Shown: positions 2,218-56,100, counted from the first letter of the stretch. The stretch: DNA of 64,000 nucleotides from Macrostomum lignano (GCA_002269645.1 NIVC01002552.1:62001-126000); one strand, 5' to 3'. Notes: generated by a model from the sequence alone, not told the origin. Made by a program: numbers and translations.

Positions 2218-2849
2218 CGGTAATTTCCATTCTTTCGAAAGAATGCACAGAGTGAGCGAAATAATTGAAAATCTGGCTTCAAAATATTGCATTAATAATT
2301 TGTCATCACAATGAACGGCTGGTTGATCCAGTGAAACAGAATGCAGACGCAAATCTTGCCAAACTCATGAGACCCGAGCCTACAGATCGCCACTCCTCAA
2401 TCGATGATAGAGAGGCCTAAGCCAGGAAAAAAGGAACTTTCGGCAGAAAAAATTTCCAACCCTGTCATCATTCCCAACCCCTCAATCCCTCTCTGATCCC
2501 ATCGCGCCCTTGCGAAAGCCGCTCAGACAGGGGGACGGGAAAATTCTGGGATCGGGGGTCCGGCAGCTCCCCCCTCCACACGATCGACATGTACTGTGCC
2601 CCTCCCCTGCTAAGCCTCCAAATCTCCCATAAATTCTATCCCCTTTGCTTGGAGATTTTCTTCCCCACCCCCGTTTTCCCCGCTCTTCACTGGCCGGCTC
2701 CGGGGGCGAAAATCCCCGCCGCCCCCGCGCCGCGGAGCCCGCGAGAAGAAAATCTCGCGCCAGCCGGCCAAGGACGGAGGAGCCGCGCGCAGCCAGCAGT
2801 TGCTCTGCCGGAGTCTCCGAAGCAGCTCAGCGAGTCTGTGCCAGCCAGC

Positions 2850-7740
<4,891 letters not shown>

Positions 7741-28370: not shown

Positions 28371-28994
28371 CTACTGCCAAGCCAGCGAAGCTTCTGAGTG
28401 CTCATTAGAATCAGGCAATAACTGGGCAGTTTGCTGCTCCTGCTGCTGGATACTCGGCCTCTCCCGAGCCAGCTGTCTGGAGAGCTCGCGCCTCTGTTTG
28501 TAGGTTGTGAACCCTTCCTCGGAGCCCAAAGCCTTCAGATAGGGGTCACGAAACGGCTCGTTCGGCCCAATGTCTGGCACGCGAAGTCGAGAATTCTCAT
28601 CCAGCTGCTGGTTGGACCGCAGCCTGAGCATCCGGTCCTGCAGCACACTGTCAACCATGTCTACTCGGGTCACTCGGGACAGGCAGAGTGGCACATAGGC
28701 GACCAGGCCGAGCACGATGCCGGTGCTCAGGGCGAAGAAGTAGCGGCCAAGGACAGCGGCGAATGGCAGGTGATTGTAGTAGCCGGCCCGGTGGCGGTAC
28801 CACACAAAGCCCGAGAAAAGGCCGGTGAGCGGCAACTGGCCATAGACCATGGACTCGTCCCGGCACTTCTTCATGTACACCATGTCCTCGTGGGTGAGCT
28901 CGCGGCGCTCTTCAGCCGGCGCTGAAGACTGCGGCTGCTGCCGGCTACTCGTTGAGGTCTGCGAATTTTCCTGCCCGAGCAGGTGCAAGTGAGC
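28371..28994 (-). CDS. OCIA-domain protein (OCIAD/asrij-like), coding exon; first exon or start not identified
   Basis: ELTHEDMVYMKKCRDES..YGQLPL..LFSG...G...RYFFALSTGIVLG.VAYVPLCLSRV...DSVLQD matches the OCIA pattern (L(T)xEExxxxxECxxES...PL...SYxxxC...SxL); C-terminal TTYKQRRE. Acceptor TAG at 28995-28997 in phase 0. Confidence 0.7.
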   Translation of the reverse strand, partial: AHLHLLGQENSQTSTSSRQQPQSSAPAEERRELTHEDMVYMKKCRDESMVYGQLPLTGLFSGFVWYRHRAGYYNHLPFAAVLGRYFFALSTGIVLGLVAYVPLCLSRVTRVDMVDSVLQDRMLRLRSNQQLDENSRLRVPDIGPNEPFRDPYLKALGSEEGFTTYKQRRELSRQLARERPSIQQQEQQTAQLLPDSNEHSEASLAWQ

Positions 28995-30204: not shown

Positions 30205-33200
30205 TCATTTGGTCGCATCTTGCGTGGCCTCGATATACATCAGCAGGCAGTTCTTGACAGCTTCGCACGTAGATTTTTCAACGGCCGTGTGCACCATTCG
30301 CGCAAAGCGAAGCAGCTGCGGTCCGCCAGGGGTCAAGGCCTCGCAGTAGGGGTGGCAGACGCAGTCAAACCGACGGGACCAACTTTCAACAAACAGCCTG
30401 TCGCCGTTGTTCGTCTGTCCTTCATCGTTACGGCCGTACCAGAAGAAGAAATTGTGGCACGGAAATAGAAACGGTCGGATGTAGCAGGTCTCCTCCATGC
30501 GGCACAGGATAAAGCGAATGTCTGACCTGGGGCACAGAGCCTGCAGCTCTTGCTCTGTCATGATTCGCATCGATGCATAGGTGCGCACGCAATCATCGGG
30601 GTTGTCGAAGCGCAGCACGCAGAACTCGCAGTTGCGGCAGACCTGAGCTGGTTGGAGATGCGGCGAAAAGACGCTGCGCACTTGCGGGTACTTCTTAAGG
30701 AAGTTTCGCACCAAGACGTGCTTGCCCAACTCGGAGTTGATGTTCCACACTAGGATGAAGTGCGGCTTCCTGTAGCCGTTCGGCACAGGGCAGAATGGTA
30801 ACATAAACGGGCGCAAGTGCTTGAACTTGTCCCAAGATCGATAGCTCCATTCGCTCACAAAAATGTTGTCCGGCAGCTGTATATTGAGGCGCTCCATCTC
30901 TTCGTTAAGCTTTATTTGAAGCGATCGCGTAGCTGAGAACATGGACGAACTCATCGCAGCGGGTGAGCAGCGAAACACGGCTTGTTTTGTCAGCACTTGA
31001 GGCACCGGCTGAGGATAAATGTGCACGTAGATGCAGTAAGCTTTGCAAGTTCGCTTCACGATCTCTTCGATTTCGAATGAGTCCATACTCAATGGAAAGC
31101 CTCTTGCAGTGTAGTATATGTCGGGCCCGTAAAGCAAACACCAATAACTACTGGCCGATCCGAGCTGAACACTGCCCAGCTCGATAGGGGGCACGCGATC
31201 CGAAGCGGGCCGGTCTTCGACGCATGCAAATTTCTTTGGACAGCTGTCCTCGAGCTTAAGCAGTTCGGTCAACTTCTGGCACACAACAGAAGGACCATCG
31301 ACCGCGAGCTGTTCAACAATATGTTTGGCGACGACATCTAGAGCCGAAGCGTGTGGTGCTATCGGCATGGAGTCGGTGTGGCAGTTGCACACAAACGGTA
31401 CATAAGGCCTGTCAGGCAAAGAGTCTTGTGGACACATGCTATCCCAGTCGGAATCGAGGTCCCAATGAAGAAAGTTGTGACAAGGAAAGGAAAATGGCGG
31501 AATCAAGCAAGTCTCTTGCATGCATACGAACGAGAACTTTACTTTACCGCTTGAAAATACAGCCTGCAACTCCTCCTCGGCAGCTTCTTCCAGTCTTTGC
31601 ATCATTACGGTGCAGTCTTCGGAGCTGTTGAACCTAGCAACGGCGTAGCCACAGTTCAATTGAATTGCGTTGCTCTTGAATCGGCCTTGCTTATATGACT
31701 TCCGAAATAGTCGCGGACAGTTAAAACTGCGTGCGCTGGGCATAGACCTACGCATGTTGTACAGAATGTGATTCGGATGCACATTGCCTGGTATATTCCA
31801 AATTAATAGAAACATGGGCTCAAAGGCTCGCGTCTTAGCTACGGGAACAAAGAAAAATGTATGCGGAAGATTAAACTTCATTTGATGAAATGCCTCTTCT
31901 GTATAGTCCTGTGCAAACAGATGCTCGTTACTGCACAGGTCACCAATCTTGTCCTTGACTTGATTAACCGAGGGCATAGGTGTCTGTTCGCTTAAGTTGC
32001 AAATAACACTCTTTCTCAAACCCTTAGGGTGAGTAAATGCGTAAATGCTTTCTATACCGTCAATTCGGCTGCAGACGGCGTCAACCAAGTCGACTGTATC
32101 TACCTCTGGATCGAATCCTGAGATTCGAAGGTATGGCATGCCGCCAAATTTGATTGACCAAGTGCGCTCCAGATAGCAAGACGGCGTCTCATCGTAGTCA
32201 TCCTCCTGCTCCTCTGCAGCTTCGTGCATGGAGAACGAACTTCGCCTACCACGACGCTTATTGCCGCTGCCCTGCTCAGAATCACGGTCGGGGCCGCGTT
32301 CACTTCGAGTATCTCGGTCGCGATTGCGATCCTGATCTCGCTGGGGGTCTTTGCTACTTCGACTATGACCTCGTTGGCGACTGCGGCTGCGACTGCTTCT
32401 GCGCTCTCGAGAACGCGATCTAGACCGGCGCCGCGATCCGGAACCGTGTTTGGACCTGGACCTGTCGCGATGGCTTCTGCTCTCGTCTGCTCGATGCCTG
32501 CTGCTGCTGCTGCGGCCGCGACCACTGCTACTTAGGGATGTATATGGTATCCTGCCACCTTGGCTGGGTGAGCTAGGGCGATAGCTGTCAGACTTAGGTG
32601 GCAAGCCAGATGAGGATGTTGTAGCAGTAGACGATGCTGCCAACTTCATTGTCCTAGACGACAAAGATGCGAGCAGTCCAGGCACATCCTTGTTAAGCTT
32701 CGGCGATGGGGCAAGTGAAGACTGCAACGGGGGTGAAGTGGGCGAACGCGCCCCACTATAGGAAGAAGCGCGAGGTCCCCACAGTTCGAACGCATTAATC
32801 TGACGCTGACGAGGTGGCACGCGAGCCGAACGAATTCTATCCAGCACTACCTGCCGTTTGGAGTGGCTGATGCGCAGAAAACCAGTGGTGTCGGAGCCAG
32901 AATCGCCGGGTATCAGTGCAAGATCGGTCTCTCTAGCACCAATGCAAGCAGCTAACTGCTTGGCTGTTGTAGACGGATCGATGTCAACAACCAATACAAA
33001 GTCCATTAGCTGCTTGTCAGCAGGCGGAGAACCAGACGAGCCGCTTTGAACAAACAGTGGAAATGACACAGAGAACTCGTTCAATGCTGAGATCATGCCC
33101 TGCCACATGCTTGGCGGAACAGCATCAAGGAGCAGTATGTAGCTCATGCCAAATGGTATCATTTGTCTGATATGGTTTTGATAGACTTTGTAGATCTGTG

Positions 33201-33423
33201 CCAACTGAGGTGTGTGCTGTGACACATAAATAAAATCAGACTGGACAAGCTCAAGTTCTCCTACATCTTCCTGATTAGAGCCTACTGGCATAGGATTTGA
33301 AGCCGATTGGCCAACAGGAAAGCTAAGCAGCTTTTGCAAGTGTTCATTGGATACAAGGTGGGCATTATAGTCAATGGGTGTGTAGAAATATTCACTACAC
33401 AATTCGCAGTATGGTAGATCCAT
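30205..33423 (-). CDS. Intronless 1072-aa putative RNA-binding protein: N-terminal U1/matrin-type C2H2 finger, RS-rich region, several degenerate RRMs and a duplicated Cys/His module
   Basis: YCELCSEYF..PIDYNAHLVSNEH; RSRS tract at ~32250-32560; RRM-like FLLIWNI...GYAVARF and FILVWNI...EFCVLRF; internal duplication of about 320-340 aa. Open frame of 3.2 kb. Confidence 0.85.
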   Translation of the reverse strand: MDLPYCELCSEYFYTPIDYNAHLVSNEHLQKLLSFPVGQSASNPMPVGSNQEDVGELELVQSDFIYVSQHTPQLAQIYKVYQNHIRQMIPFGMSYILLLDAVPPSMWQGMISALNEFSVSFPLFVQSGSSGSPPADKQLMDFVLVVDIDPSTTAKQLAACIGARETDLALIPGDSGSDTTGFLRISHSKRQVVLDRIRSARVPPRQRQINAFELWGPRASSYSGARSPTSPPLQSSLAPSPKLNKDVPGLLASLSSRTMKLAASSTATTSSSGLPPKSDSYRPSSPSQGGRIPYTSLSSSGRGRSSSSRHRADESRSHRDRSRSKHGSGSRRRSRSRSRERRSSRSRSRQRGHSRSSKDPQRDQDRNRDRDTRSERGPDRDSEQGSGNKRRGRRSSFSMHEAAEEQEDDYDETPSCYLERTWSIKFGGMPYLRISGFDPEVDTVDLVDAVCSRIDGIESIYAFTHPKGLRKSVICNLSEQTPMPSVNQVKDKIGDLCSNEHLFAQDYTEEAFHQMKFNLPHTFFFVPVAKTRAFEPMFLLIWNIPGNVHPNHILYNMRRSMPSARSFNCPRLFRKSYKQGRFKSNAIQLNCGYAVARFNSSEDCTVMMQRLEEAAEEELQAVFSSGKVKFSFVCMQETCLIPPFSFPCHNFLHWDLDSDWDSMCPQDSLPDRPYVPFVCNCHTDSMPIAPHASALDVVAKHIVEQLAVDGPSVVCQKLTELLKLEDSCPKKFACVEDRPASDRVPPIELGSVQLGSASSYWCLLYGPDIYYTARGFPLSMDSFEIEEIVKRTCKAYCIYVHIYPQPVPQVLTKQAVFRCSPAAMSSSMFSATRSLQIKLNEEMERLNIQLPDNIFVSEWSYRSWDKFKHLRPFMLPFCPVPNGYRKPHFILVWNINSELGKHVLVRNFLKKYPQVRSVFSPHLQPAQVCRNCEFCVLRFDNPDDCVRTYASMRIMTEQELQALCPRSDIRFILCRMEETCYIRPFLFPCHNFFFWYGRNDEGQTNNGDRLFVESWSRRFDCVCHPYCEALTPGGPQLLRFARMVHTAVEKSTCEAVKNCLLMYIEATQDATK

Positions 33424-34439
33424 GCTACCAACTCAGTTAAAATTGTTGGAACTCAGAAAAAAGGTCCAAGCAGTGATGCTTAGTCAAGCTGAAAAATTAA
33501 GAATTGAAAACAAGCTAAAGATTGTGCCTCTTCTTTTAAGGACTTGAACAGTTGCAGAAAATCTACCAGCCATAAATTTTGCTTCCTATATATCCCCTAA
33601 TGAGATGCCATTGAAAGTAAAGTGTCTAGACTATTCACTACCTATGACAGCAGGATTATTTAAATTTAAGTTAAAATCTTACCTACATTCTCTTTCAAAT
33701 TTGTATATTGAAAAAGTATAAAATTGAATAGCAATACTATAGGCCTGCAAAAAGTTATGAAATTTTAAAATTATTTAGACTTGTGACAAAAATCAGGCTA
33801 GGCCTAGATCTTTCTTCTTTTGTGAAATTTTATCTTAGCAACTTTCCTTTCTGCCATTAGACAATTTTCTAATTAAGCCATGAGCCAACCATAACAAACC
33901 TTAATTATTCCTTAGATTCTTGTTACCTTATTTGTTAATAGTATTTCAATGCTTAATATATTAAAATTTTTAAATTACTGTATAAGCTATAGATTAATCT
34001 TAGAATAACCTAAATGCAACTTAAGCCAATATTGCTATAGTTTAGTCCTATGACATTTTTTGAGAATATAATCAATCTAACTAGAATTTAATTAACCTAT
34101 TAGTGTATACTAGAATTGTAATCTTAATTAGAATAGCAGTTTAGTACATTTGTATATTTTATTTATACAAGTTAGGAATCTCTTTACTTGAGTATCTTGA
34201 GTAATTTATTAACTAAAATAGATAACTAGCTAAACAGTTATCATTAACTAATATAGTTATGATACAATAATGCAAATTAATATATACTTTTATCTCATAA
34301 ATGTCAACATATCTTTTTTTGAATAGTTATTATTTTGGTATGACTTTTCTTAAGATATTTATATTTTTTAGAAGCATATTGATTTTCTTTTTCATCTATG
34401 TAAATTCTAAAATATCTTAAAATCTAAAAAATCTCTTAT

Positions 34440-35620
34440 CAACCTTGAAATCCTTCTAACCCTAACCCATAAGGCTCATTCCATGAGTGTGTCACACATG
34501 GGTTCATTTTTTTATTGTAACATTTTCTTCATTTTTTATGTTTTTGAATGCACAAATATATATATTTTTAGTTTCTACTAGCAATCTACGCCCCCCGTTG
34601 GGGAGCCAAAGAAATGCAATACACGTTTTTTTAATAAGCTACATGTATCCTTGAAATCTTAAAAAACCTCCTGTCAAACCTTGTAAGCCTTGACATGTCA
34701 GTAATCCCCCCCCACAAGCTTTAACATATCAACTTCCCCCCTTGACATCTCAGCAATGCCCCCAATAAGCCTTGGAAATCTAAAAATATCTGTCAACCTT
34801 CTAACCCTAACGCTAGCCTAACCCTAACCCTAACCCTAACCCTAACCCAACCCTAAAGCATTGAAATTTCAGTAATTCTCTCTAAGAGTCATTATAGCAC
34901 TACTACAGTATTATAGCGAATCCCTGTAAGCCTCGACATCGTAGGGATTCCCAAATGAATATCTTAACTTCGACATGAAGCTTCTTTTATTTTTTACATT
35001 ACGCTTTTTTTATCAGCGATCCCTCCCCTGAGGAGGCATCAAATAATGTAATAAAAAGTTTTCAATAAACTACATGTAGCTTCTGACTTTAGCCTTGATA
35101 TCTTATTTATACCCCCGTGAGCCTTGACATCTAAGCTATTCCCCCCGTAAGCCTTGACATGTCAGCGATGGCCCCCATAAACCTTGAAATCTAAAAAATC
35201 CCCTGTTAACCTTGAAACCCGCTAAAATCTAACCCTCGACCCACACCTGACCTAAACCTAACTTTAACCCAACCTAAAGCCTTGAAATCTCAGAAATTCT
35301 TCTCCCCTAAGCCTTGACATTTTAGTGATTCCTTCTTTAAGAATCACAGCACTATAACGATTTCCACCAAGCTTTGACATCGTTGCGATTCCCAAATAAA
35401 TCTTTTAACTTTGACATGACTTTTATTTTATGTATACATAGTGCTACTTTTATTTTTTACATGACTCTTCTTCTATCAGCGCCCCCCGTGTCGAGCCAAC
35501 AAATAATGCAATAAAAAAATTGAGTAAAGTAAATGAACTTTGAAGTAGCTTCTGACTTTTGCTTTGACATCTCAGAAACCCCCCCCCCCCGTAATCTCAG
35601 TTATTCCCTGAGACCCTTTA
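34440..35620. repeat. Degenerate ~450-bp tandem triplication with (CCCTAA)n patches
   Basis: Homologous blocks near 34580, 35020 and 35480 (CCCCC..GAG.CA.AAA.AATGCAATA..., TACATGTAGCTT). Recurrent CCTTGA(C/A)ATCT subunit; telomere-like runs at ~34455, 34800-34857 and 35225-35275. Confidence 0.6.
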
Positions 35621-35789
35621 CGTCTCAGTTTTTCTCCCCAGCACAGCATTATAGCTGCATTTAATTTTTACATGACACCCTTCATGTCTGACATGATGCT
35701 TCTTTTATTCTACCATGATGCTTCTTAATTTTTTAAATGACACTTTCATTAGTTTTAAATGAGGCTCCTATGATTATTTCATGACGCTT

Positions 35790-37000
35790 CTACGATTTCT
35801 GCAGGAGGCTTCAATGATTTTTACATGACGCCTCTATGATTTTTACATGACGCTTCTATGATTTTCATATGACGCTTCTATGATTTTTTACATGACGCTT
35901 TTATGATTTTTTACATGACGCTTTTATGATTTTTACATGACGCTTCTATGATTGTTTACATGACGCTTCTATGATTTTTTACATGGCGCTTCTATGATTG
36001 TTTACATGACGCTTCTATGATTTTTACATGACGCTTCTATGATTGTTTACATGATGCTTCTACGATTTTTATATGACGCTTCTATGATATTTTAAATGGC
36101 GCTTCTATGATTTTTTAATGACGCTTCTATGATTTTTTACATGACGCTTCTGTGATTGTTTACATGACTCTTCTATGATTGTTTACATGACGCTTCTATG
36201 ATTGTTTACATGACGCTTCTATGATTGTTTACATGACGCTTCTTTGATTGTTTACATGACGCTTCTATGATTGTTTACATGACGCTTCTATGATTGTTTA
36301 CATGACGCTTCTATGATTGTTTACATGACGCTTCTAAGATTTTTTACATGACGCTTCTACGATTTTTTACATGACGCTTCTATGATTGTTTACATGACGC
36401 TTCTATGATTTTTTAAATGACGCTTCTATGATTTTTATATGACGCTTCTATGATTTTTTACATGACGCTTCTATGATTGTTTACATGACGCTTCTACGAT
36501 TTTTTTAAATGACGCATCTATGATTTTTATATGACGCTTCTATGATTTTTTAAATGACGCTTCTATGATTGTTTACATGACGCTTCTATCATTTTTTACA
36601 TGACGCTTCTATGATTTTTTAAATGATGCTTCTATGATTTTTTAAATGACGCTTCTATGATTGTTTACATGACGCTTCTATGATTTTTTACATGACTCTT
36701 CTATGATTTTTTAAATGACGCTTCTATGATTTTTACATGACGCTTCTATGATTGTTTAAATGACGCTTCTATGATTGTTTACATGACGCTTCTACGATTG
36801 TTTACATGACGCTTCTATGATTGTTTACATGACGCTTCTATGATTTTTTAAATGACGCTTCTATGATTGTTTACATGACGCTTCTATGATTTTTTACATG
36901 ACGCTTCTATGATTTTTAAATGATGCTTCTATGATTTTGTAAATGACGCTTCTATGATTGTTTACATGACGCTTCTATGATTTTTACATGACGCTTCTTT
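35790..37000. repeat. ~22-24-bp minisatellite, ~50 copies
   Basis: Unit ATGACGCTTCTATGATT(G/T)TTT(AC/AA). Confidence 0.97.
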
Positions 37001-38276
37001 TTAAAAAGTCTTTTAGTTTTCCTGACGTTGAAAAGCTTTAATTAAAAAAATTATACTCTATGAAAATTCAAACCATCGTCACTGCATTTAGCAGTTCAGT
37101 TTGTTCACCTTTAGGCTAGCTCTCATCGTTTTGATAACATCAACTTTTGCACTTATATAACTCAACACTTTTAAATCCAAGCATAGAGTAAATCACACGA
37201 AGCAGTTATGACATAATCAGTTTCTCAGTCAGTCAGTATCAGTTAACAATATGGTTACGCAATTTAAATCAAGTCTGGTGCTACGCTTCCACACTGCATT
37301 TTCAATTCAAGTCGGAGTTACAATTCAGTTATGATGCAATCTATTTCAGAGTCAGAATTCAACCAGTCAGTTTTTTCTCTAGCATTCTTACAAATGCATT
37401 TCAAGTCAAAAAGTTTGCTTGACCTTTGCAAAAAAGCATGTTTTTCGAATATTTAATGCCTTTAGCATCGAGCAATTTCTTAGCCACGATGCATGTACCG
37501 TCACGGGAAAATTTCTGATCTAACAGCGCAAGTTCGAACAAAATCGGTCCAGCCATTTTTTCTCTAATATATCACATATATATATATATATATAGACATC
37601 ACATTTTTAGTATATAGGATTGGCTAATATCAATTTTTTTGCACATATTATTTAAATAAAGCTCTAGTCTATATAGTACCTCATGTGGCCCATGACAAAC
37701 ACAATTGACATTGTCTTTTTCCTACTTAATAAAATATTTCATTCAAAATATTTGTATAATATAAATTATGTATTTATTTGATAAAGTATTTACCTATGTT
37801 CTTTAAGAAAATAGACTTAAGAATATATTAGAAAGATGGCTAAGTATGGCTAATTTCCAGTTTGTGTATTGATTTTTATGGCTCTAAGATCACAAAGACC
37901 GAAGAAAACACAAAAAACAATTCACTCCCCTTTACCTTTGAGTTCTTCAACTTCGACCGTCACATGCACAATAAGCTGAATTAATTGAGAATCAAAAACT
38001 TCTGTGTCACAAGTTAAACAAGTTCAAAAGATCTAGTTGGTTATTATTTTTTTATGAAAAAAAGGCTGCAAAACCCCTTTTTCATATATTTTTTTGTGAA
38101 ATTAATGTACCAACCTTCGACTATCACACTCGTGGAAATAGCCATAACCCAAACCTAACCTAAACCTAACCTTTACCCTAATGCCTTGATATCTCAAAAA
38201 TATTTGTATAATTATTTACATTTGTTATTTGCCATGAGCCTTGACATCTTAATAACTCTCCCCTAAAAGCATACAT

Positions 38277-38430: not shown

Positions 38431-40137
38431 CCAAGCATGCCTAAAAGTCAAAGCAAGTTTATATAAGGCTTTTTATTTTCAACATTACATTTTTTAGTTT
38501 GTATGATGCTTTTTTAGCTTTGAAATGATAATCTTTTTGACATAAGGCTATTTTATATTTTACATGATATTTATTTTTTATATAACACTTCTTTTATTTT
38601 TAATAAGGCTTCTTTTACTTTTTACACAACACTTCTTCTATTTTGTTGTTTTAAAAAGCATGCTTTTCAAATATTTAACATATGTATACATAGCAGACTT
38701 TAAGCTCTGCTGATCTAATGATAGCAAACTTTATGCTCTGCTATATATTCAGTTGTTTTAAATTCATAAGTAGGCCTAGCTATATGAAAAATATAGAGCT
38801 AGAAGTTTGACATAGATTGCTTTTTGCAGTTTTGTTTTATCTATTATGCCATGGTTAAAACATTATGTATTGGTTTCCCGACAGACATTCAGACAGACAT
38901 TCAGAAATCGTTCATTAAATGTTTAACAAAATTGTCTATTTATTACGCAAGATACTGTGAATTTATAGAAACTTTTACGCATGTCTCTGCTTTAAAAAGA
39001 CACCTTAGACACACACAAAGATGCTTCACAAGCTGAGATATTCCTTAGCAACTGTTGTTACGACGTTTCCCAATATACTGAATACTGTATATAGTAGTTT
39101 TTTGAGAAGCTGCTACATCGTCCCACTTTGGTCTTTCTGCATGAAATTTGCACAGCTGTTTTACGCATGTCTCTGCTTTAAAAAGACACCTCAGACACAC
39201 ACAAAGACGCTTCACAAGCTGAGATATTCCCTAGCAACTGTTGTTACGACGTTTCCCAATATACCGAATACTGTATATAGTAGTTTTTTGAGAAGCCGCT
39301 ACATCGTCCCACTTTGATCTTTCTGCATGAAATTTGCACAGCTGTTTTACGTATGTCTCTGCTTTAAAAAGACACCTCAGACACACACAAAGATGCTTCA
39401 CAAGCTGAGATATTCCCTAGCAACTGTTGTTACGACGTTTCCCAATATACCGAATACTGTATATAGTAGTTTTTTGAGAAGCCGCTACATCGTCCCACTT
39501 TGATCTTTCTGCATGAAATTTGCACAGCTGTTTTACGCATGTCTCTGCTTTAAAAAGACACCTCAGACACACACAAAGACGCTTCACAAGCTGAGATATT
39601 CCCTAGCAACGGTTGCCTGAAGGCATGCTCATATCTAACTTGCATTTGGACACCGGCATGGAATGTACGTTATACTTGTATTTGCCTTCTATCGATCTGA
39701 AGCACTTTACTTTAGGCAGATCTATCAGCAATATTAACACTGTACAGGAGGCAGTTTTTCTTTATGTACATTCGTTGTCATTTTGCCATGTACATTACGC
39801 AAGAGGCCTAACACAGAATATGCCTGCACCCTGTTTTGGTATATAATCTTTCTCACTAACAAGCTCATTTTGACAATATGGATGAATTGTCTCTGCTGAC
39901 TACAATATCTCTATCTTATATTGGCAAGAGTACAATAAGCACTAGCATATTTTGGTACTTAATTCATCTGACAGTTTTTTTTCGGCATAAGGTTGTCAAT
40001 ATACATTTTGGCTTTGTTCCTGGTCACCATCTCAATGAGTTTCCCTACCAAGGAAGAAGTAAGCATTTTTTTGGCTTTGTGAGAGACTGACGTCTATGAA
40101 TGGCTATATAGGCAAGGACCATTGTAGTGCGAGAAGA

Positions 40138-40747
40138 AGGACTCGGCACTCACGAACTACGGAAAAATTTTTGAAGGCTGATTTTCCGCAGGCTTCGTGT
40201 CTGACTACCAGTGCGCCATTTTTGTGCAACCACATAAATTTGTGCTTTATTCATGCTTATTGCTCTGCTCATTTTTGATGCATGTTGTGCACGTAATTAC
40301 ATGCATACATGTAATTTTTTCTATTAAATTTTTTTCAATAAATGGCTACAAGCACTAGACTTTCAAGATTTTCAAGTACGAGACACCTCGTGCAATATGC
40401 CATAATTGCCATAAATTAATTGCCATAATTGCTTACTGAGAACCTCTCATCACAATGTATCACAGAAGAAATCAGCCGGCAGAAGTGAGCTGCAGAGATG
40501 CAAACTGATACAATATACAAAAAGCATTAGCCGTATCACTGCACTATCAGAGGACAGTACAAAAATCTTTGTAAGTGGCAAGCATCACTAAACTGGGTGG
40601 TAAGGTCAGCCAATGGCCAATGTTCTTTAAAAATTCAGCTGCTAATGTAGTCAAAAAATCATCTTAATGTCTGTATCTGAAGAGGCAGCATCAAACTGAA
40701 AATCAGCCTTCAAAAATTTTTACGTGGTTTGTGAGTGTCGAGTCCTT
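40138..40747. mobile_element. Nested ~610-bp inverted-repeat element inside the Mutator element
   Basis: AGGACTCGGCACTCACGAACTACGGAAAAATTTTTGAAGGCTGATTTTC ... GAAAATCAGCCTTCAAAAATTTTTACGTGGTTTGTGAGTGTCGAGTCCT; no clear TSD. Confidence 0.6.
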
Positions 40748-40937
40748 TTTCTACAGTGGTCCTTGTATGTACATGTAGGTTTTGCAATGTAATTTGGAGT
40801 GCTAAATTATGGCTTACTACTGTTGACTTACTTCCCAGATCGACGATGCCGTCTCTTGGGCAAGGAAGGCGCACTCCATTCCTAAAGATTACCGAAATCG
40901 AGATCCTATTTTCTCGTTTTTATGCTCGCGACTGGGA

Positions 40938-43164
40938 ATGAGAAATAACTTAAGAAATCGTATGACTATGTGGAATTGGCTTCGGAAAGCCACATCTACA
41001 TGTAGTACCCGATGTTCGCCCGGACAACCTCCTCATGAAGATGAGTCTTGTTTCCAACAGAACAGCAATTCTTTTAGACCTCATAGCTCCACTGAATATC
41101 AGCCAACCAGTGGCCATGCTGAAGCCCAGCCAGCAGCTGGCCAGGCGACCAACAATGAGAGAGCCGGAAGTCCTGAAGGGACTCCTGAAGGGACTCCTGA
41201 AGGGACTCCTGAAGGGACTCTTGAAGGGACTCCTGAAGGGCAACTTGTTATGGACTGCTCCTCAAGGAATGAAGTGACAGCGACAGTGACAATATCGATT
41301 AACGCTATAAGGAAGATTAATTTACAAATCAATAATTCCAAGTATGTTTTTTCGAAGCCAGCACTAAATGAAGCTCTCTGCAAATCATTGAGATCTGTAT
41401 CGTCTTGTTGCCTGCGCATGAGGGGTTACTATCATATTAGTGCGGTTGAATCTAGAAAAAAATCTACGAATTTCTGGACAGTAAGGGCTGCGTGCAAGAT
41501 GCAGGGGTGCAAGAGAGAACTTACTTTTGTAATGAAGGAAGAACCCCAATCGCAAGAACGCTAGGAGTGGCACGTCATCGGACGAGGTCTCTTTGACCAC
41601 TCGAAAGCCAAATCATCAACTTTTAGAAGAATAACAGAGGATGAGGAAGAAAATTTCACAAAACTTGTCGCAGAGCATGGGGCGTCTGGAGCGCATCGAA
41701 AGCTGTCCAGTGAAGATCAGCACATGCGTCACGTCTTGAGCAAAAACTTTGACTCATGCAAATCGAAATTTGTAATGGAAAGAATAGCCAAAAAGGTAAA
41801 TGAGGCGAAATTACTACATAAGGACGTTAATATGGAATTACTCATTATGCAGACTGCTCTACAAGAAGAATACCCACACGAGTACTTGCTGGGAATAGTT
41901 AGAGAGCACTGCGCTGATCCCCTGCGTGTCATTTTGTACTCTGGTTACCAACTGCAATATTTAATCGACCTAATACAGGAAAATGAGCTTAATGTTCTTC
42001 ATATTAATGCCACCGGATCGATAATTAAAAAAAACGGATTATATCGGACGCGTATTCCTGTACTCTATTGTAACAACAGCTACCAACTGCGTGAAATCTG
42101 TCTCAATAGCAGACTGCATTACAAACGGACATTCTGTTGCATCAATAGCACATTTCTTGCGTGTTCTGCACCATCATATCGTCAACATGATGTCACGGTT
42201 TAGGCAAGCCTACGTACCAATCCTATGGGTGACAGACTTTTCCTGGGCACTGATACATAGCTGCTTTGAATTCCACCAATGCGATGTGGAGACGTATTTA
42301 AATATGCAATATCACTATTTCCGAAAAAGCCAACACTTCTGTCACAGTTACGGGGTAATGCTCTGTACAAATCATCTAATGCATTCAGTAAGCCAGTATC
42401 TAAAGCAGAAGAAGTATTCAAAGCGAATCAAGGACACTTTTTTGAGATACTTCTACAGAGTTATGACTATTAAGGTTGTAGAAGAAGTTAAGTCAACAAT
42501 TCGGGATGCAATGAACATTTTTTTGACAAAGTCTGCGAAAGTATGTCAGCGTATAATGTCCAAACCCTATAACAGCAAAGATGATAAGCAAGGGACCAAC
42601 TCAGACGGACAGTCAGAGGAAGGAGATCACGAAGACAATGACAGTACTAATGAGGACAAAACGAATAGTTCATTATACAAACAATTGCCCTTTTATGAGT
42701 ACTTTAATGCATGGAGGACATCAATCGCTAATAGCACTGTGGAAGTGGAGGAAGTTGCTATCGATAACAAATTGCATTCACCGGAAATAGTCGAAATGTT
42801 TGTCATCCGATACCTCTCCTACTTTCCCTTATGGGCTGCCTGCGTCTGGAACCATGAATTCTTGGAAAGCCGCGTGAAGTCTCCTTTTTCAAATGCTCAC
42901 ATTGAGAGCTGGTTTAAGAGAATAAAATCCAAATTTCAGCTACCCGTCTCTGTCGCAGAGTTCTCGAAATTAACCGCAAGTTTCTGTCATGAAAGGATAA
43001 AGAGGCGAAATTACTTCGGCAAGTTGCTCCACCACGATTTTGCCAACGAAAAAGGAAGGCCGCGGCGGAGATAGCTGATGGGGCTGAAGAAAGCTGGGGC
43101 AAAAAACGATGCAGATACTCAAACAGTAGGCAGACACCACGAACAAAGTCACAGCCTCCCCCCT
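40938..43164 (+). pseudogene. Disrupted MULE (NOF/Phantom-like) DDE transposase
   Basis: N-terminal C-x4-C...H zinc-finger-like segment; LHINATGS (catalytic D reads N); RVFLYSIV; WVTDFSWALI; CTNH (CxxH); SNAHIESWFKRIK (catalytic E). In-frame TAG at 41562-41564, frameshift near the A-run at ~42026, probable further shift near 43030. Confidence 0.85.
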
Positions 43165-43174
43165 GTAAGTTTCC

Positions 43175-43498
43175 AAAATCGCCACTCGACTCTCAGCAAC
43201 CGCCACGCGACTCTCAGCAACCGCCACACGACTCTCAGCAACCACCACGCGACTCTCAGCAACCGCCAAGCGACTCTTAGCAACCGCCACGCGACTCTCA
43301 GCAACTGCCACGCGAGTCTCAGCAACCGCCACGCGACTCTCAGCAACCGCCACGCGACTCTCAGCAACCGCCACGCGACTCTCAGCAACCGCCACGCAAG
43401 TCTCAGCAACCGCCATGCGACTCTCAGCAACTGCCACGCGACTCTTAGCAACCGCCATGCGACTCTCAGCAACTGCCACGCGACTTTCAGCAACCGCC
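43175..43498. repeat. 21-bp minisatellite, ~15 copies, probably intronic within the transposon gene
   Basis: Unit CTCTCAGCAACCGCCACGCGA, between donor GTAAGT (43165) and acceptor CCCAG (43501). Confidence 0.93.
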
Positions 43499-43501
43499 CA
43501 G

Positions 43502-44754
43502 CTCAAAAATTTTGGCTCTACGAGATGTAAGAGGAACGCCAATTTCAGAAGAGCAATTAGCATCACTCAATGGTACGAACTGGCTGGACTATGTGGTAAG
43601 AAATTTGTAGGAAATTTAATAATTTAAATTAATTTAATGTGTAGTATATTAGTACGTAATTAGTACGTAATTTAATGTGTAGAAGGTATTAAAAATATTA
43701 TCAGGTTGTGTATGGCTACTTGACTGCAATTGCTAGCGGAGCAGATGGAGTTGCTATGCAGCAGAGCGATTTTCTTTCCTTGCTAGACGGTGGTAGCAAA
43801 GGCTCTCAGCACATTGAATCTCTTCGGAACTATTTCCTTGGTCGAGCGGTAAGCATAATGTGAAATTTTAACTTTCAATCTGATGTTGGTTTCACCATCG
43901 ACCATTGCTACGAGTATAGTTGATATCCACATGCAGAGGTGGAACAATCCTGCAACAATTCTATAATTCTGAAGAATTAATTATAAAAAATTTTAGACAG
44001 TGAAGAAAATTCTGGTCCCGATGCTTACGCAAAGCCATTTTTGGCTTTTGGCTGTGTTCTTTGATGATCTCACAGTGCACTATCTGGACTCCATACGTCG
44101 GAGTGACAGAAGAAAGCAACTGGCATTGAACTATACTGCCAAATTGAAGTAGGTAAAATGTACACGAGAAGGAGGGCTTTGAAATTTGCAAGGCATATTA
44201 ACTGAACTTACGTGCCATTTTCTAATTTTAGTGAGCTCCTTGCTTCTTCAGCTGCTTCTACGTTTCTCCCTGAGCAGATGGAGCACCTTAGGGGTAGAAA
44301 GTTTAGAAGTGTAGTAAGAATGTGCACCCAGCAAAAAGATACGTTTTCATGTGGCGTTCTGACCTGCTTATTTGGCTGCAATTTGTTTCTTGATAAGTGC
44401 ACTGTGTTGTCTGCGTTCACTGCGCAGAAATTGAGCGCCGCTTGCCAGCACATTAAAAATACTGTGATTAATTTCATGGAAGAAACTGAGCAACCCATTT
44501 GCAGGTTCTGTGGCTTGGAGGAGCCCGCTGGCCGAAGGAAGCGAATTGAATGGGTAAATTAATGCGATGTAAAATACCCATGCATTTTATATGTACATGT
44601 ACAACAGTAAGGGATTCAACCAGCTTGCAAGACCTTTTCTGCATCATTTTAGATTGAATGCCCCTCCTGCCTCTTTTGGTACCACAAAATCTGTTGGAAC
44701 AGCTGGAAAAGCACGGCAAATGTTTGCTCCGATTGCGCCAGACTTGATGCATAA
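43502..44754 (+). CDS. Spliced Ulp1/SENP (peptidase C48) domain plus PHD finger carried by the Mutator element; exons ~43502-43595, 43705-43848, 43997-44148, 44232-44553, 44653-44754
   Basis: PISEEQLASLNGTNWLDYV|VVYGYL; KILVPMLTQSHFWLLAV...HYLDS (His codon 44036, Asp); QKDTFSCGV (Gln, Cys codon 44350); CRFC...EW|IECPSCLFWYHKIC...VCSDC is a C4HC3 PHD. GT-AG sites are phase-compatible. Confidence 0.85.
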
Positions 44755-47700
44755 AATGCTGACTGTGTTGAATAAAGAAAGGGACAATGCAGTTATCGCG
44801 GATCAAGTCGGACGTGATATTTATGGGGTGTTTTATGTTTCGTTGCACGAAATGTTTTGATGCTTATTTTCTGTAGTTTGATTCTCAGTTGCTGACGGGA
44901 TTACCCCATCCTGAGTCGATAACATTAATTCTGTTCGATTTTACTAATGTGCACTGTGCACTAATTTCATGCAGAAAGACCAAAGTGGGACGATGTAGCG
45001 GCTTCTCAAAAAACTACTATATACAGTATTCGGTATATTGGGAAACGTCGTAACAACAGTTGCTAGGGAATATCTCAGCTTGTGAAGCATCTTTGTGTGT
45101 GTCTGAGGTGTCTTTTTAAAGCAGAGACATGCGTAAAACAGCTGTGCAAATTTCATGCAGAAAGATCAAAGTGGGACGATGTAGCGGCTTCTCAAAAAAC
45201 TACTATATACAGTATTTGGTATATTGGGAAACGTCGTAACAACAGTTGCTAGGGAATATCTCAGCTTGTGAAGCGTCTTTGTGTGTGTCTGAGGTGTCTT
45301 TTTAAAGCAGAGACATGCGTAAAACAGCTGTGCAAATTTCATGTAGAAAGATCAAAGTGGGACGATGTAGCGGCTTCTCAAAAAACTACTATATACAGTA
45401 TTCAGTATATTGGGAAACGTCGTAACAACAGTTGCTAGGGAATATCTCAGCTTGTGAAGCATCTTTGTGTGTGTCTGAGGTGTCTTTTTAAAGCAGAGAC
45501 ATGCGTAAAACAGCTGTGCAAATTTCATGCAGAAAGATCAAAGTGGGACGATGTAGCGGCTTCTCAAAAAACTACTATATACAGTATTCAGTATATTGGG
45601 AAATGTCGTAACAACAGTTGCTAGGGAATATCTCAGCTTGTGAAGCGTCTTTGTGTGTGTCTGAGGTGTCTTTTTAAAGAAGAGACATGCATAAAAGTTT
45701 CTATAAATTCACAGTATCTTGCGTAATAAATAGACAATTTTGTTAAACATTTACTGAACGATTTCTGAATGTCTGTCTGAATGTCTGTCGGGAAACCAAT
45801 ACATTAAAACATTACAAGTGCTTAAAGTTCAAAAACATGATAGGACCCTCTTGTGGAATGATGCTACCTTTTTGCCATTTAAATGATCATAAATCTCATT
45901 TTGCTTTAATACTTTTAAAGCTAAAAGGGTAAAGAGGACAAATGTAATATATTAATTCATTTGTTTTTTATATCTTTTAGACAATATAGGATATTCAATA
46001 ATAGGAATTAGAAAAGTAGCCCTACAACACAATAATAGGCCTAGGCCTAATACAAATGCCTACAGACATAGTCTATACTAACATTAGTAATAATAGGGCC
46101 TAGAGGCTAGTAGAGCCTAGTAAAAATGCATTAGGCCTACATAATAAATCACTAAAATGATAAAATAAAATGTTGAAATTTAACTTCAAGTTAAGATACA
46201 AGATAAGGGCCTACAAAGTTTTATAAGGCCTAAATTTTTCTATTATTTGACAAGACTAATTAAAAGCAAGTGTCTTTTTACCTAGCCTTAGCTTAGCCTT
46301 AGCCCTTAGGAGGCTAGGCCTAGCCCCAGGCAAATCAAATAAGGTTTATCATTAGGCCCCTATCAACTGAAATAGAAAAAATCTTTCAAAATTTCTATGG
46401 AGTCTCAACACTATTAAAAAGGCTTATAAATTACATACATTCATTTAAAATAATTAAAATATAGTAATAATAGTTTAGTTACTGGACTGGACTAGACTGG
46501 ACCCACTGATCACTGCAAACTAATTTTAAGCCTAATCTTGATTATCTTGCCTTGCCTTTGTTTAGGCCTTAGCCCTTAGGCTAAGGATCTGTTTTGTTAC
46601 ACTGATTGGATTTAATCGACCCTTTCTTTAGGCTTAGCTTTGTAAAGTGTCGCACGCATGCACACAGATGATAATACAAAGTAAGAATGTTTGGTGTGTT
46701 GATTCCTTGATCTATTGTGTTACATAGCGTTGGCGTAGCAACTATAGATCGCATGAGGCAGAAACTTATCGACAAGGGCACGAGGCATAGATAAAATTTT
46801 CGGTGTTAGCATAGATTAACAATATTTTTTGTCTTTTAAAGTTTTTTCTACATACTGTATTTACTTTCAAAATGAACAAGTTTTAATTAAGAATATTATT
46901 TGAAAAATATAATTTGTTTTACACACGAAAATTTTCGCTTTCAGGAGTCTAAAAAAATAACTGACCTAAGAAAAGCGCTTTTGCACTAGCAACTTTGCGA
47001 GAAATAGAACAAGGCAAGCTGTGAGCTGTATGATTGATATACAGATACTATTTTGCCCAAAAAAGTCTTTAAAGTAGTCGACGGTTAGTATTTACTACCA
47101 GTTGACCATTCCTTTAGAAACTTTAGAAGCATATCGACCATGGAATTTTATATTCTTTTGGCTTTGACCACTTCGCTTCTGCAGCTGGTTCATGACCAGC
47201 TCATTAAGTCGATAAATTTAATTTTAACCATTTAATTTTTAAATATTTAATGACATTTTACCTTGTGCAACGCTTAAAGATTCCAAGTTTAAATATAGTG
47301 TTGATTTTTTAATTTCTGGGACTATAATATACACATTGGGCATATTGTTTTATAATCTGTTTCATGATTTACCTTATTATTTATTCTTAGTAACTGTAAA
47401 TAGATTTTCTTACTTTGATATTATGCTTTGGCCTTTCAGCTTTAGGGTGCTTATATTTTCAATTGTTTGACTTAAAAGTTACCTATGTAACTAGGATACT
47501 TACTAACATTACCTATACTCATAGTAATGTCTAATATTATATGTTTACTTAGGCCTATTGGCTTTTTAAGTAGCTATTAAGTAAAAATATTGTTTTTGAG
47601 TCAACAAATTGAATATTAAATTTTTTTCGAGCTGTACTTCTATTTTTTGCCATCTTTGTTGCCTAATATATACTTTGCTGTAGTTGTAGTTGACATTGAC

Positions 47701-53100: not shown

Positions 53101-56100
53101 TGCGGCTGGCAGAGGTTGTCAAGACCGTTCTGCTGTATATAGTTCGAGATGCTGAGTCTTTTATAAATATAATAGGTTATAGTTTTGCCATAAACTTAAA
53201 TAGAAAACCCAATGAATGCGCGATACTTTCTCCGCCAACGCAGAGTCGCCACCGACCAGCGCGCCCGCCGCAGCCGACTTAGGCGTCTGGAAGCCGGACG
53301 TCAGGCGGTTCCCCGCAGACCTCGCTGCAACGCAGGACGATTTGGACCGGCACCCGAACTGTATGAATTCCCACAGTATATGCTGCACTAGCCGATTAGC
53401 TCACTAATTGCCTTCCATTTCGTCAAAATTCCAGTGGCAAAGTTTGCCCGCACAGACTACATAATTGGGGTGCTCGCAGTCATGTCAGCATCGTTGCTGC
53501 TCAATCTGGGCTTCTGCGTGCGCTGCATCCTGGCAAGGCACTACGTGGGTGAGTTGATTACTTCAACTGCGGTAGTTTTACCATTCAAATTTATTTGTTG
53601 GCAATGATTGTAAAGTAACAACCCAGACACGAACTGCAGACTGCTGCTCACCTACTGTTCAAGACCGGACACTTTAGCGCAGGGGTCGGCAAACCGCCCC
53701 CGGGCCACATGCCGCCCACAAAGCCTCTCTATCCGGCCCTCGGGTTCTTTGAGACTTCACAATAGCAATCCGGCCCGCTCGGTGTTTGTGTCTTCTCAGC
53801 TCTCCTCTCCTCTCTCTTCTCTCATCCCCTCTCCTCTTCTCTAATCTCCTTCCTCTCCTCTCTCCTCTTTCTCCTCTCCTCTCCTCTCCTCTCCTCCTCT
53901 CCTCTTATCCTCTCTTCTCTCCTCTTCTCCTCTTCTCCTCTCCTCTTCTCTTCTCTTCTCTTCTCTTCTCTTCTCTTCTCTTCTAATCTCTTCTCTTCTA
54001 ATCTCTTCTCTTCTCTTCTAATCTCTTCTCTTCTCTTCTCTTCTCTTCTCTTCTCTTCTCTTCTCTTCTCTTCTCTTCTCTTCTCTTCTCTTCTCTTCTA
54101 ATCTCTTCTCTTCTCTTCTCTTCTAATCTCTTCTCTTCTAATCTCTTCTCTTCTCTTCTCTTCTCTTCTCTTCTCTTCTCTTCTCTTCTCTTCTCTTCTC
54201 TTCTCTTCTAATCTCTTCTCTTCTCTTCTCTTCTCTTCTCTTCTCTTCTCTTCTCTTCTCTTCTAATCTCTTCTCTTCTAATCTCTTCTCTTCTCTTCTC
54301 TTCTTTTCTCTTCTCTTCTCTTCTCTTCTCTTCTAATCTATTCTCTTCTCTTCTCTTCTCTTCTAATCTCTTCTCTTCTAATCTCTTCTCTTCTCTTCTC
54401 TTCTCTTCTCTTCTCTTCTCTTCTCTTCTCTTCTCTTCTCTTCTCTTCTCTTCTCTTCTAATCTCTTCTCTTCTCTTCTCTTCTCTTCTCTTCTAATCTC
54501 TTCTCTTCTCTTCTCTTCTCTTCTCTTCTAATCTCTTCTCTTCTAATCTCTTCTCTTCTCTTCTCTTCTCTTCTAATCTCTTCTCTTCTCTTCTCTTCTC
54601 TTCTCTTCTCTTCTCGTCTCTTCTCTTCTAATCTCTTCTCTTCTAATCTCTTCTCTTCTCTTCTCTTCTTTTCTCTTCTCTTCTCTTCTCTTCTCTTCTA
54701 ATCTATTCTCTTCTCTTCTCTTCTCTTCTCTTCTCTTCTAATCTATTCTCTTCTCTTCTCTTCTCTTCTCTTCTCTTCTCTTCTCTTCTCTTCTAATCTA
54801 TTCTCTTCTCTTCTCTTCTCTTCTCTTCTCTTCTCTTCTCTTCTCTTCTCTTCTCTTCTAATATCTTCTCTTCTAATATCTTCTCCTCTATTTCGTCTCT
54901 CTTCTTTATTCTCTCGCCTCTTTTTTATCCTCTGTCCCCTCCCATGTCCCGCAGTCATGCGCCAGGTAACCAAGGTTCTGTATCTGGCCCTTGAGGTAAA
55001 AAAGTTGCCCACCCTGCTTTAGCGGAATGCTAATCTTCATTCCCGCATTTCCGCATTCAGCCAAACAAATTTCTCTGCCTCCCAGCGCCATGAGTTGGCT
55101 GAATAAATCGAATTTCCGTTTTCCTTGTTTGAGTGCCTTCTGGAGACGCAAAATTGGCTATACGCCGAAATGAGGGGAGGAGTTATCGCAGTGTACTTTA
55201 AATTGGTTTTCAATCCTGACCGCAGATTTTGCCTGGCTGCCTGCGGTTCCGACCTCGCTGGGACAAGGAAACAGAGCGCTGGGGGGGGGGCTTGAAGAGG
55301 GGCGTGGGAGGCCGGAAGCGAGCGCTGGTGGCGAGTAGAATTTCTGGAACGAGCGAGTTAACAAGCTGAGAGCTGAGGCAAATTGAAAGTGCGTCTTCAA
55401 CATCAGCTTCGATTGCCATCATCTCAATCTTCACTTGTTCAGCGCATTCTTGAAACAGACTCTTTGATCAGCTTGTCTTTCCAAGCAATCTATGCCGATT
55501 TTCCCTGAGGAGAATTGCCATTCATCCAATGTTTTCTCAAGCTTATTCTGCAAGTTTCCCTGAATAGTGCTCACTTAAAATTGTGGTAAAATTTCTAGAC
55601 ATTAAAGACCGTCTGAGCGTTGTCGTTGTTGACCGTTGCCCCGGAATTTGAGTCGGCAGAGTCTGGTGCATTTCTTAGAAATCGTCAGCCTGAAAGATCC
55701 TTCGACAACCTCAAAGACGTAGCACAAGTTTTACTGATGAAGTTCCTTCATTGAGCAGTTATCCGAAATTGCAGAAACGCGCAGACGAAACCAGAGGAAG
55801 CCACTGGGTTGGCTGGGCAGCTGCCTCTGCGTGAGCACTGTACAGGTGGATCTGGACGCGGCCGAGGCAGCGCACGGGCAGCAGCGCTCCACCGGCCAGA
55901 GGCAACGCCGGCAAGAGGGCCTGGGTGTGGCCGAGATGAGCACCGGCTCCCAGAATCAGCGGCTTCTGCAGAAGCAGCAGCAGCAGCAGCAGTGCTTGTA
56001 CTGCATGCAGACCGACTGTCGCATTCTCTACGACGACGTTGCTCGCACCGGCAGCGAATGCGGCAGCAGCTGCTTCAGAGGCTACGCAGGCGGCGGTGCC

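Follow-up and report, generated by a model that had tools for sequence, protein, structure and literature searches.

An intronless gene of Macrostomum lignano encoding a predicted SR-related protein with a duplicated RRM module and a Cys/His extension of undescribed type

Classical SR proteins (SRSF1-12) are defined by one or two N-terminal RNA recognition motifs (RRMs) followed by a C-terminal arginine/serine-rich (RS) domain of at least 50 amino acids (aa) with more than 40% RS content. Other RNA-binding proteins carry small Cys/His domains next to their RRMs, as in the CPEB arrangement RRM1-RRM2-ZZ, in which the ZZ domain is a C4 + C2H2 cross-brace. Here, we analyse a protein whose closest known families are the generic tandem-RRM and SR-related proteins, with no specific homology to any named family. 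It is encoded on the minus strand of a stretch of 64,000 nucleotides of the flatworm Macrostomum lignano (GCA_002269645.1, NIVC01002552.1:62001-126000), hereafter the window, from whose first nucleotide all positions are counted. We conclude that its open reading frame (ORF) is probably a functional, expressed gene for a multi-domain SR-like RNA-binding protein. This protein belongs to a small family of paralogues that we detected in no other species. The domain architecture given below is very likely correct.

The gene is a single uninterrupted ORF of 1072 aa, from ATG to TGA, with an in-frame stop 12 nucleotides (nt) 5' of the ATG:

30205 to 33423, minus strand: complete single-exon coding sequence (CDS) of a M. 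lignano BOX15_Mlig033299g2-like copy, identified from the ORF listing, its identity to that protein and the ratio of non-synonymous to synonymous polymorphism (pN/pS).

The ORF product is 99% identical (13 differences) to the M. lignano hypothetical protein BOX15_Mlig033299g2 (P0001). The exact protein sequence of the window, from a 136-kb contig, sits in the 90% cluster of this protein, as does a third copy, BOX15_Mlig019659g1. In total, there are three genome copies, all intact at 1072 aa and placed in syntenic blocks; in the two other copies (L001 and L002), the gene order is UQ_con, this gene, a 199-aa OCIA-like gene and adenylosuccinate lyase (ADSL). The annotated gene span is exactly 3219 bp in both, with a CDS lacking introns, in agreement with the intronless ORF reported at this very position by the first-pass annotation. 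The syntenic copies fit the redundancy of the Mlig_3_7 assembly, or large-scale duplication in this genome, reported by its authors (PMC5730564). Comparisons between copies show that the gene is under purifying selection and that constraint is strongest on the C-terminal modules. Over the whole CDS, the pN/pS against the two other copies amounts to 0.14-0.15, and within the module region to 0.03-0.12. Identity between copies is 98.7% or more in the CDS, compared with 90-94% in the 1-kb flanks. Amino acid differences are concentrated in the N-terminal half (13 in 420 N-terminal residues versus 3 in 652 module residues, Fisher P = 0.001). Since the GenBank gene models of M. lignano were built from an RNA-seq-guided transcriptome (PMC5730564), the annotation of the gene implies that it is expressed.

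The C-terminal two thirds of the protein consist of two homologous modules of 310-340 aa, arranged in tandem. Comparing aa 421-760 with aa 761-1072 by BLASTP gave an alignment of 299 residues with 24% identity and an E-value of 9e-24, showing that the internal duplication is real and ancient. All the peptide pairs on which the duplication had initially been proposed occur in the translation: EPMFLLIWNI/KPHFILVWNI, NCGYAVARFNSSEDC/NCEFCVLRFDNPDDC, EEELQA/EQELQA, MQETCLIPPFSFPCHNF/MEETCYIRPFLFPCHNF and FVCNCH/FDCVCH. Each module comprises two RRM-like sub-domains (A and B), a Cys/His extension and a C-terminal helical part. Leaving the extensions for later, the features are the following:

31144 to 32163, minus strand: module 1, aa 421-760, from its homology to module 2 (BLASTP) and hidden Markov model (HMM) domain boundaries.
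31879 to 32136, minus strand: module 1 sub-domain A, degenerate RRM-like, about aa 430-515, from its alignment to sub-domain A of module 2.
31519 to 31821, minus strand: module 1 sub-domain B, divergent RRM, about aa 535-635, with an RNP2-like FLLIWNI, an RNP1-like CGYAVARF and the invariant C604 in helix 2; isoelectric point (pI) 9.7.
31189 to 31353, minus strand: module 1 C-terminal helical tail and linker, about aa 691-745, from its alignment to the helices predicted in module 2.
30208 to 31143, minus strand: module 2, aa 761-1072, from BLASTP and the AlphaFold2 model based on a six-row alignment.
30847 to 31116, minus strand: module 2 sub-domain A, RRM-like beta-alpha-beta-beta-alpha-beta, aa 770-859, with strands (E) and helices (H) modelled at E10-16, H22-33, E35-44, E51-59, H68-85 and E95-99.
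30496 to 30759, minus strand: module 2 sub-domain B, divergent RRM, aa 889-976, with FILVWNI, CEFCVLRF and the invariant C945; pI 9.3.
30214 to 30324, minus strand: module 2 C-terminal pair of alpha-helices, aa 1034-1070, modelled at H274-290 and H293-310 with a predicted local distance difference test (pLDDT) of about 60.

Sub-domain B (hereafter RRM-B) is a divergent but genuine RRM, as indicated by both sequence profile and predicted fold. We aligned six module cores from four or five M. lignano paralogues (alignment A1, mean column identity 36%). When the A1 profile was compared with the PDB, nine of the 11 best matches were RRMs, all in one register from strand 1 to helix 2. The best was hnRNP Q (E = 0.0044), and the other RRMs matched included SRSF2, PABP1, SRp46, RNPS1, PPIL4 and TIAR. 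The HMM consensus of A1 matches Pfam RRM_1 with 24.9 bits (cut-off 20.7, E = 1.8e-5) over positions 2-60 of 70. With phmmer and profiles, we also looked in the PDB for matches to the modules, sub-domain A, the N-domain described below and the Cys/His tail, and obtained generic RRMs for sub-domain B alone. In Pfam, scans of pieces, paralogues and consensus sequences yielded the zinc finger and, from the consensus, RRM_1; matches to AMA-1, NAF and DUF families were discarded as noise (E > 0.06).

In the AlphaFold2 model of module 2, residues 10-99 and 129-216 each form a domain of the type beta-alpha-beta-beta-alpha-beta. Built from the six-row alignment, the model reached a pLDDT of 71.5 and a predicted template modelling score (pTM) of 0.75, versus 33 and 0.22 from the single sequence. 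The elements of sub-domain B (E129-133, H141-151, E155-159, E174-179, H182-193 and E210-216) are modelled with pLDDT 85-91. The top Foldseek matches of this model in the PDB are the tandem-RRM structures of hnRNP A1 UP1, Pub1, Sxl, HuR, CELF, PABP and SHARP (E-values from 1e-5 to 5e-4), with alignments of 180-220 columns that span both sub-domains. Among viral structures, Foldseek gave just weak ferredoxin-like or RRM matches. Sub-domain A is thus best described as a degenerate RRM-like domain, by predicted fold only, and comparing it with sub-domain B using hhalign gave a negative result. The first-pass reading of each module as RRM-RRM therefore holds for the second RRM by sequence profile and predicted fold, and for the first by predicted fold only.

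After RRM-B and before the two helices, each module carries a Cys/His extension of 55-70 aa:

31354 to 31518, minus strand: module 1 Cys/His extension, aa 636-690, with C639, C648, H649, C679, C681 and H682; invariant columns in alignments A1 and A2.
30328 to 30495, minus strand: module 2 Cys/His extension, aa 977-1032, with C980, C989, H990, C1021, C1023 and H1024, and a variable loop between its halves.

The PCHNF motif begins at residue 647 in module 1 and at residue 988 in module 2, the CxCH motif at residues 679 and 1021, respectively. The six-copy alignment has 15 invariant columns, six of which are Cys or His, versus 14 of the 124 columns overall (hypergeometric P = 0.002). In module 2 numbering, these six are C945 (SEDC/PDDC, at the start of helix 2 of RRM-B), C980 (ETC), H990 (PCHNF) and C1021, C1023 and H1024 (CxCH). 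The module 1 equivalents of C945, C980, C989, H990, C1021, C1023 and H1024 are C604, C639, C648, H649, C679, C681 and H682. The signature C, C, H, C, C, H initially proposed for this appendage needs amending in two respects: most of its positions are invariant, but the Cys of PCHNF varies (PAHNL in one paralogue) and there is an additional invariant Cys in helix 2 of the RRM. In the model of module 2, the extension forms a beta-hairpin (model residues 219-228) and places CxCH at 261-264, with pLDDT 65-75; the loop between its halves (240-256) is variable in both length and sequence, and disordered in the model (pLDDT < 50).

Searched by itself, as profile A6 and as the consensus of this profile, the extension matched no Pfam family or PDB chain, and no larger piece did either. 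The claim that the appendage is of an unrecognised type thus stands, within the reach of these Pfam and PDB searches, and the extension would be a domain of undescribed type. That its Cys/His element binds metal, presumably zinc, is a prediction to which we give about even chances.

The N-terminal half contains a zinc finger, a domain specific to the family, a linker and the RS domain:

33340 to 33411, minus strand: U1/matrin/JAZ-type C2H2 zinc finger, aa 5-28, with C6, C9, H22 and H28 in the pattern C-x2-C-x12-H-x5-H.
32779 to 33261, minus strand: family-specific N-domain, aa 55-215, conserved twice in the paralogue model P0002.
32524 to 32778, minus strand: Ser/Pro-rich linker, presumably disordered, aa 216-300, from its composition (25 Ser in 85 aa, pI 10.7).
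32224 to 32523, minus strand: RS domain, aa 301-400, with 24 RS/SR dipeptides and pI 12.0.

The assignment of the finger to the U1/matrin type is borderline but credible, in pattern and in profile. When the N-terminal 215 aa were scanned alone, they just passed the Pfam cut-off for zf-C2H2_jaz (22.8 versus 22.6 bits) and scored 19.2 bits for zf-met (cut-off 21.2); in the scan of the whole protein, zf-C2H2_jaz scored 19.3 bits, below cut-off. The matrin-type finger seen in the first pass is therefore a narrow pass. The RS domain announced with it is much clearer, with 29 of the 50 residues of aa 307-356 in RS/SR dipeptides (58%). The N-domain is matched twice in P0002 (BLASTP E = 1e-14 and 7e-4), and scans of pieces together with profile and phmmer searches gave no Pfam family or PDB match for it. 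Its second half (FVLVVDI..GFLRI..FELW) may be RRM-like: hhalign places FVLVVDI.. on strand 1 of RRM-B, weakly (probability 15%). The linker and RS domain (aa 216-420, 205 residues) have the densest amino acid differences between genome copies, with nine variable positions.

The alternative that survives best is that the modules are ferredoxin-like domains for protein interaction or ligand binding (pseudo-RRM, UHM-like or ACT-like) without RNA-binding activity, and that the Cys and His residues belong to a structural core and are not metal ligands. We regard it as unlikely. The observations in its favour, and others that weigh against our interpretation of the protein, are the following. Single family members fall below the Pfam RRM threshold (no match, or E between 0.18 and 0.28), and sub-domain A has no RRM sequence signal in Pfam or PDB searches. 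Foldseek also matches the tandem ACT domains of SerB2 at E-values similar to those of the RRMs, so that the fold evidence alone shows a ferredoxin-like fold and no more. Of the three exposed stacking aromatics expected from RNP1 and RNP2, RRM-B keeps one, at RNP1 position 3 (Tyr or Phe in all six copies). The other two are replaced, by Leu at RNP2 position 2 and by Val or Leu at RNP1 position 5; the Phe at RNP1 position 8 is kept, as is an invariant R-F. This loss means that the RRMs could bind protein instead of RNA. Many accepted RRMs also lack these aromatics, and their loss weakens the claim of canonical RNA binding, not that of membership in the fold. The Cys/His parts are acidic (pI 4.4-5.1), their region of the model is moderately confident (pLDDT 40-75), and C989 of PCHNF is kept in five of the six copies, with Ala in P0005. 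Two further points concern function. The RS domain is absent from the first paralogue contained in P0002 (paralogue A), where a long acidic linker takes its place; it is thus not conserved across the family, and a splicing role may not be a family property. Mlig033299 and Mlig019659 are absent from the literature and supplementary tables searched, in which we found no record of expression or phenotype.

Several observations speak against the absence of RNA binding. RRMs are what both the sequence profile and the consensus of the family match specifically, the two RRM-B domains are basic (pI 9.3-9.7), and the protein also has an RS domain and a zinc finger of an RNA-associated type. As for the six invariant Cys and His residues, metal ligation would be the simplest explanation in the presumably nuclear, reducing environment of such a protein. 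We prefer the reading of RRM-B as a predicted RNA-binding domain with a putative metal-binding extension.

We made an exhaustive phmmer search with aa 421-1072 against 1.84 billion representative proteins. It returned four other proteins, all from M. lignano, with E-values from 3e-46 to 3e-4. One of them, P0002 (UniProt A0A1I8I8L7, 2098 aa), is a chimeric gene model that includes a fragment of long-terminal-repeat (LTR) retrotransposon gag (CCHC) and protease. The fragment is joined to two adjacent paralogues of the family. The first, paralogue A, consists of a finger remnant, the N-domain, an acidic linker and one module; the second, an N-domain with one module, is the same gene as the separate model P0003. 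P0004 is a fragment, and P0005 is the most divergent member. These comparisons indicate a family of at least four or five M. lignano paralogues that have the N-domain and the module in common, and in which the RS domain and the doubling of the module are specific to the member studied here. Metagenome contigs, scanned with patterns of the family, contained no relative. When the whole protein, aa 421-1072 or the family alignment was used in word-indexed homologue searches, the protein itself or P0004 was all that came back; these negatives weigh little, as the searches missed paralogues recovered by phmmer. As the first-pass annotation had suggested, the family is lineage-restricted, so far to M. 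lignano; judged by sequence similarity, the protein has no detectable orthology to a known splicing factor.

This distribution bears on a second alternative, in which the protein would be a highly diverged orthologue of a factor combining zinc finger, RS domain and RRMs (Matrin-3, RBM20, ZNF638) or of an RRM-RRM-zinc protein such as CPEB, and the Cys/His element a degenerate form of a known zinc domain. We find this improbable. The architectures of these proteins resemble this one, either in the matrin-type finger, RS domain and paired RRMs or in an RRM pair followed by a Cys/His domain, and the finger matches both zf-C2H2_jaz and zf-met. However, the exhaustive search placed all relatives in M. 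lignano, and neither single sequences nor the family consensus matched CPEB, matrin or other specific Pfam families. The PDB profile matches are to generic RRMs, with no preference for chains of Matrin-3, RBM20 or CPEB. The spacing C-x8-CH-x~30-CxCH is unlike the ZZ, CCHC, RanBP2 and CCCH patterns, and the order of domains, with finger and RS domain N-terminal and the module doubled, is unlike that of the Matrin-3 and CPEB types.

We find just as little reason to believe that the gene is a retrocopy of an intron-bearing parent, which had been suggested at first from its lack of introns and lower GC content. M. lignano genes have a mean of 4.9 introns (PMC5730564), against which a 3.2-kb CDS without any is unusual. 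The ORF (51.4% GC) is indeed poorer in GC than two neighbouring ORFs (60-68%), but it lies above the window mean (46.2%) and its own flanks (26-35%). There is no run of seven or more A in the 1.2 kb downstream, hence no poly(A) remnant, and we identified no parent gene; a retrogene would be recognised as an intronless copy by a poly(A) remnant, by target-site duplications or by a parent that has introns. All three copies share one syntenic context, which implies segmental or whole-genome duplication, and the adjacent downstream gene of 199 aa likewise lacks introns. The duplication of the module is ancient, and the paralogues have the architecture in common. Retroposition is therefore not supported, except perhaps as an ancient event; the intronless CDS is the one mark of a retrogene that we observe.

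Finally, that the ORF is a chance, pseudogenic or transposon-derived frame is extremely improbable: the region is rich in repeats and transposons and the paralogue model P0002 includes part of the gag/protease of a retrotransposon, but the three intact copies with a pN/pS of about 0.14 and a CDS better conserved than its flanks effectively refute this explanation. The structured domain architecture with a confident fold prediction, the transcriptome-based annotation and the absence of transposon domains from the protein in the Pfam scan also count against it.

The surroundings of the gene are as follows. About 66 nt upstream of the ATG (33490-33500, minus strand), there is a polypyrimidine tract followed by AG (TTAATTTTTCAG|C), a candidate acceptor for the spliced-leader trans-splicing that is common in M. 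lignano (PMC5730564). The OCIA-like gene follows 1.2 kb downstream, likewise on the minus strand (28371-28988), as a 205-aa ORF with a 199-aa annotated product. It is intronless, and its match to Pfam OCIA is weak and below cut-off (E = 2.5e-4). It could be co-transcribed with our gene, in view of the 'g2' suffix in the gene name and of the report that M. lignano has operon-like transcription units (PMC5730564). Just upstream of the gene, a 3.7-kb AT-rich stretch (about 34473-38141, 31-34% GC) is absent from L001 and contains 56 copies of a 23-bp minisatellite (35714-36998). Further on, a 6.94-kb element (38865-45804) has terminal inverted repeats (TIRs) of 751 nt that are 98% complementary and consist mostly of a 186-bp tandem array (38973-39615 and 44954-45696). 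In L001, which lacks the element, its flanks join directly at 7589-7599. It has the appearance of an inserted TIR DNA transposon for which the genome copies are polymorphic; neither of its internal ORFs (40938-41564 and 42091-43074, both on the plus strand) has a Pfam match. At the other end of the window, an ORF of 68% GC (2589-3578, plus strand) encodes a Bcl-2 family domain (Pfam E = 2.4e-21) and is followed by a 49-bp tandem repeat (3608-3963). The window also contains about 20 minisatellite arrays with units of 17-75 bp and very long microsatellites, among them (AGAT)n of 1.4 kb (4786-6189) and (TCTTC)n of 1.1 kb (53791-54900). The artefactual long ORFs at 4743-6206 and 4759-6252 stem from the (AGAT)n array, as do strong spikes of skew along the composition profile.

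How might such a protein work? The RS domain would target it to nuclear RNA-processing compartments and allow SR-protein kinases to phosphorylate it. Contacts to RNA would be made by the RRM-B domains and perhaps also by the finger, giving a multivalent protein with at least two RNA-binding sites. The extension may fold back on RRM-B and be stapled to it by one zinc ion, possibly two, which would produce a rigid and enlarged RRM unit. The candidate ligands are C-x8-(C)H in the beta-hairpin, C-x-C-H after the variable loop and the invariant Cys that starts helix 2 of RRM-B. Taken furthest, the extension and the helix 2 Cys would together be a new zinc-binding fold built into the RRM (a 'zinc-stapled RRM') that arose and expanded in macrostomid flatworms and gave rise to a lineage-specific class of RNA-processing factors, a proposal we put forward tentatively and with more doubt than conviction. 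A likely role would lie in pre-mRNA processing or ribonucleoprotein (RNP) assembly, and domain content is what points to either; splicing in particular we consider possible, at somewhat under even chances.

If the Cys/His extension does form a metal site that is part of the RRM, this would be a new structural elaboration of a very common RNA-binding fold. It would also illustrate how domains can be newly shaped within a lineage-restricted gene family, here in a regenerating flatworm model that is ready for transgenesis. In terms of annotation, three 'hypothetical protein' entries and several mis-merged M. lignano gene models become one defined family. The wider significance is modest unless the family acts in RNA regulation of the germline or stem cells.

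The protein resembles several described systems. UniProt automatically names P0003 'RRM_2 domain-containing protein', after the Mei2-type RRM_2 (PF04059), and the IWNIP and NCGYA motifs resemble motifs of Mei2 RRM3. We set this relationship aside after no member or consensus matched RRM_2 in the current Pfam and the PDB profile search returned no Mei2. CPEB resembles each module in having a tandem RRM pair directly followed by a small Cys/His domain. We found no match to Pfam RRM_7 or CEBP_ZZ at E-values up to 10, and our modules differ from CPEB in the spacing of their Cys and His residues and in the Cys inside the RRM. Matrin-3, RBM20 and ZNF638 resemble the whole protein in the U1/matrin-type finger and the paired RRM-like domains, and the last two also in the RS region; they have no detectable sequence homology to it and another domain order, and they are not known to have a Cys/His extension after the RRM or a duplicated module. 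With SR and SR-related proteins, it has in common an RS domain of at least 50 aa and more than 40% RS/SR, combined with RRMs. No orthology to any SRSF protein was detected by phmmer. Its RS content lies above the 40% of the classical definition, but the RS domain precedes the RRMs, where in classical SR proteins it follows them, and a zinc finger and other domains are added. Because of this order, the protein is SR-related and not a classical SR protein. The protein is also close to canonical RRM_1 (PF00076), to which sub-domain B corresponds in its fold, its RNP2-like LLIWNL and RNP1-like CGYAVxRF and a family consensus, though not single sequences, above the Pfam cut-off, and to the tandem RRM folds, as in hnRNP A1 UP1, Sxl and HuR, among tandem-RRM proteins that also include PABP and hnRNP Q. 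Compared with these, sub-domain A can no longer be recognised by sequence, RRM-B is followed by the Cys/His extension and two helices, and the resulting three-part unit is duplicated.

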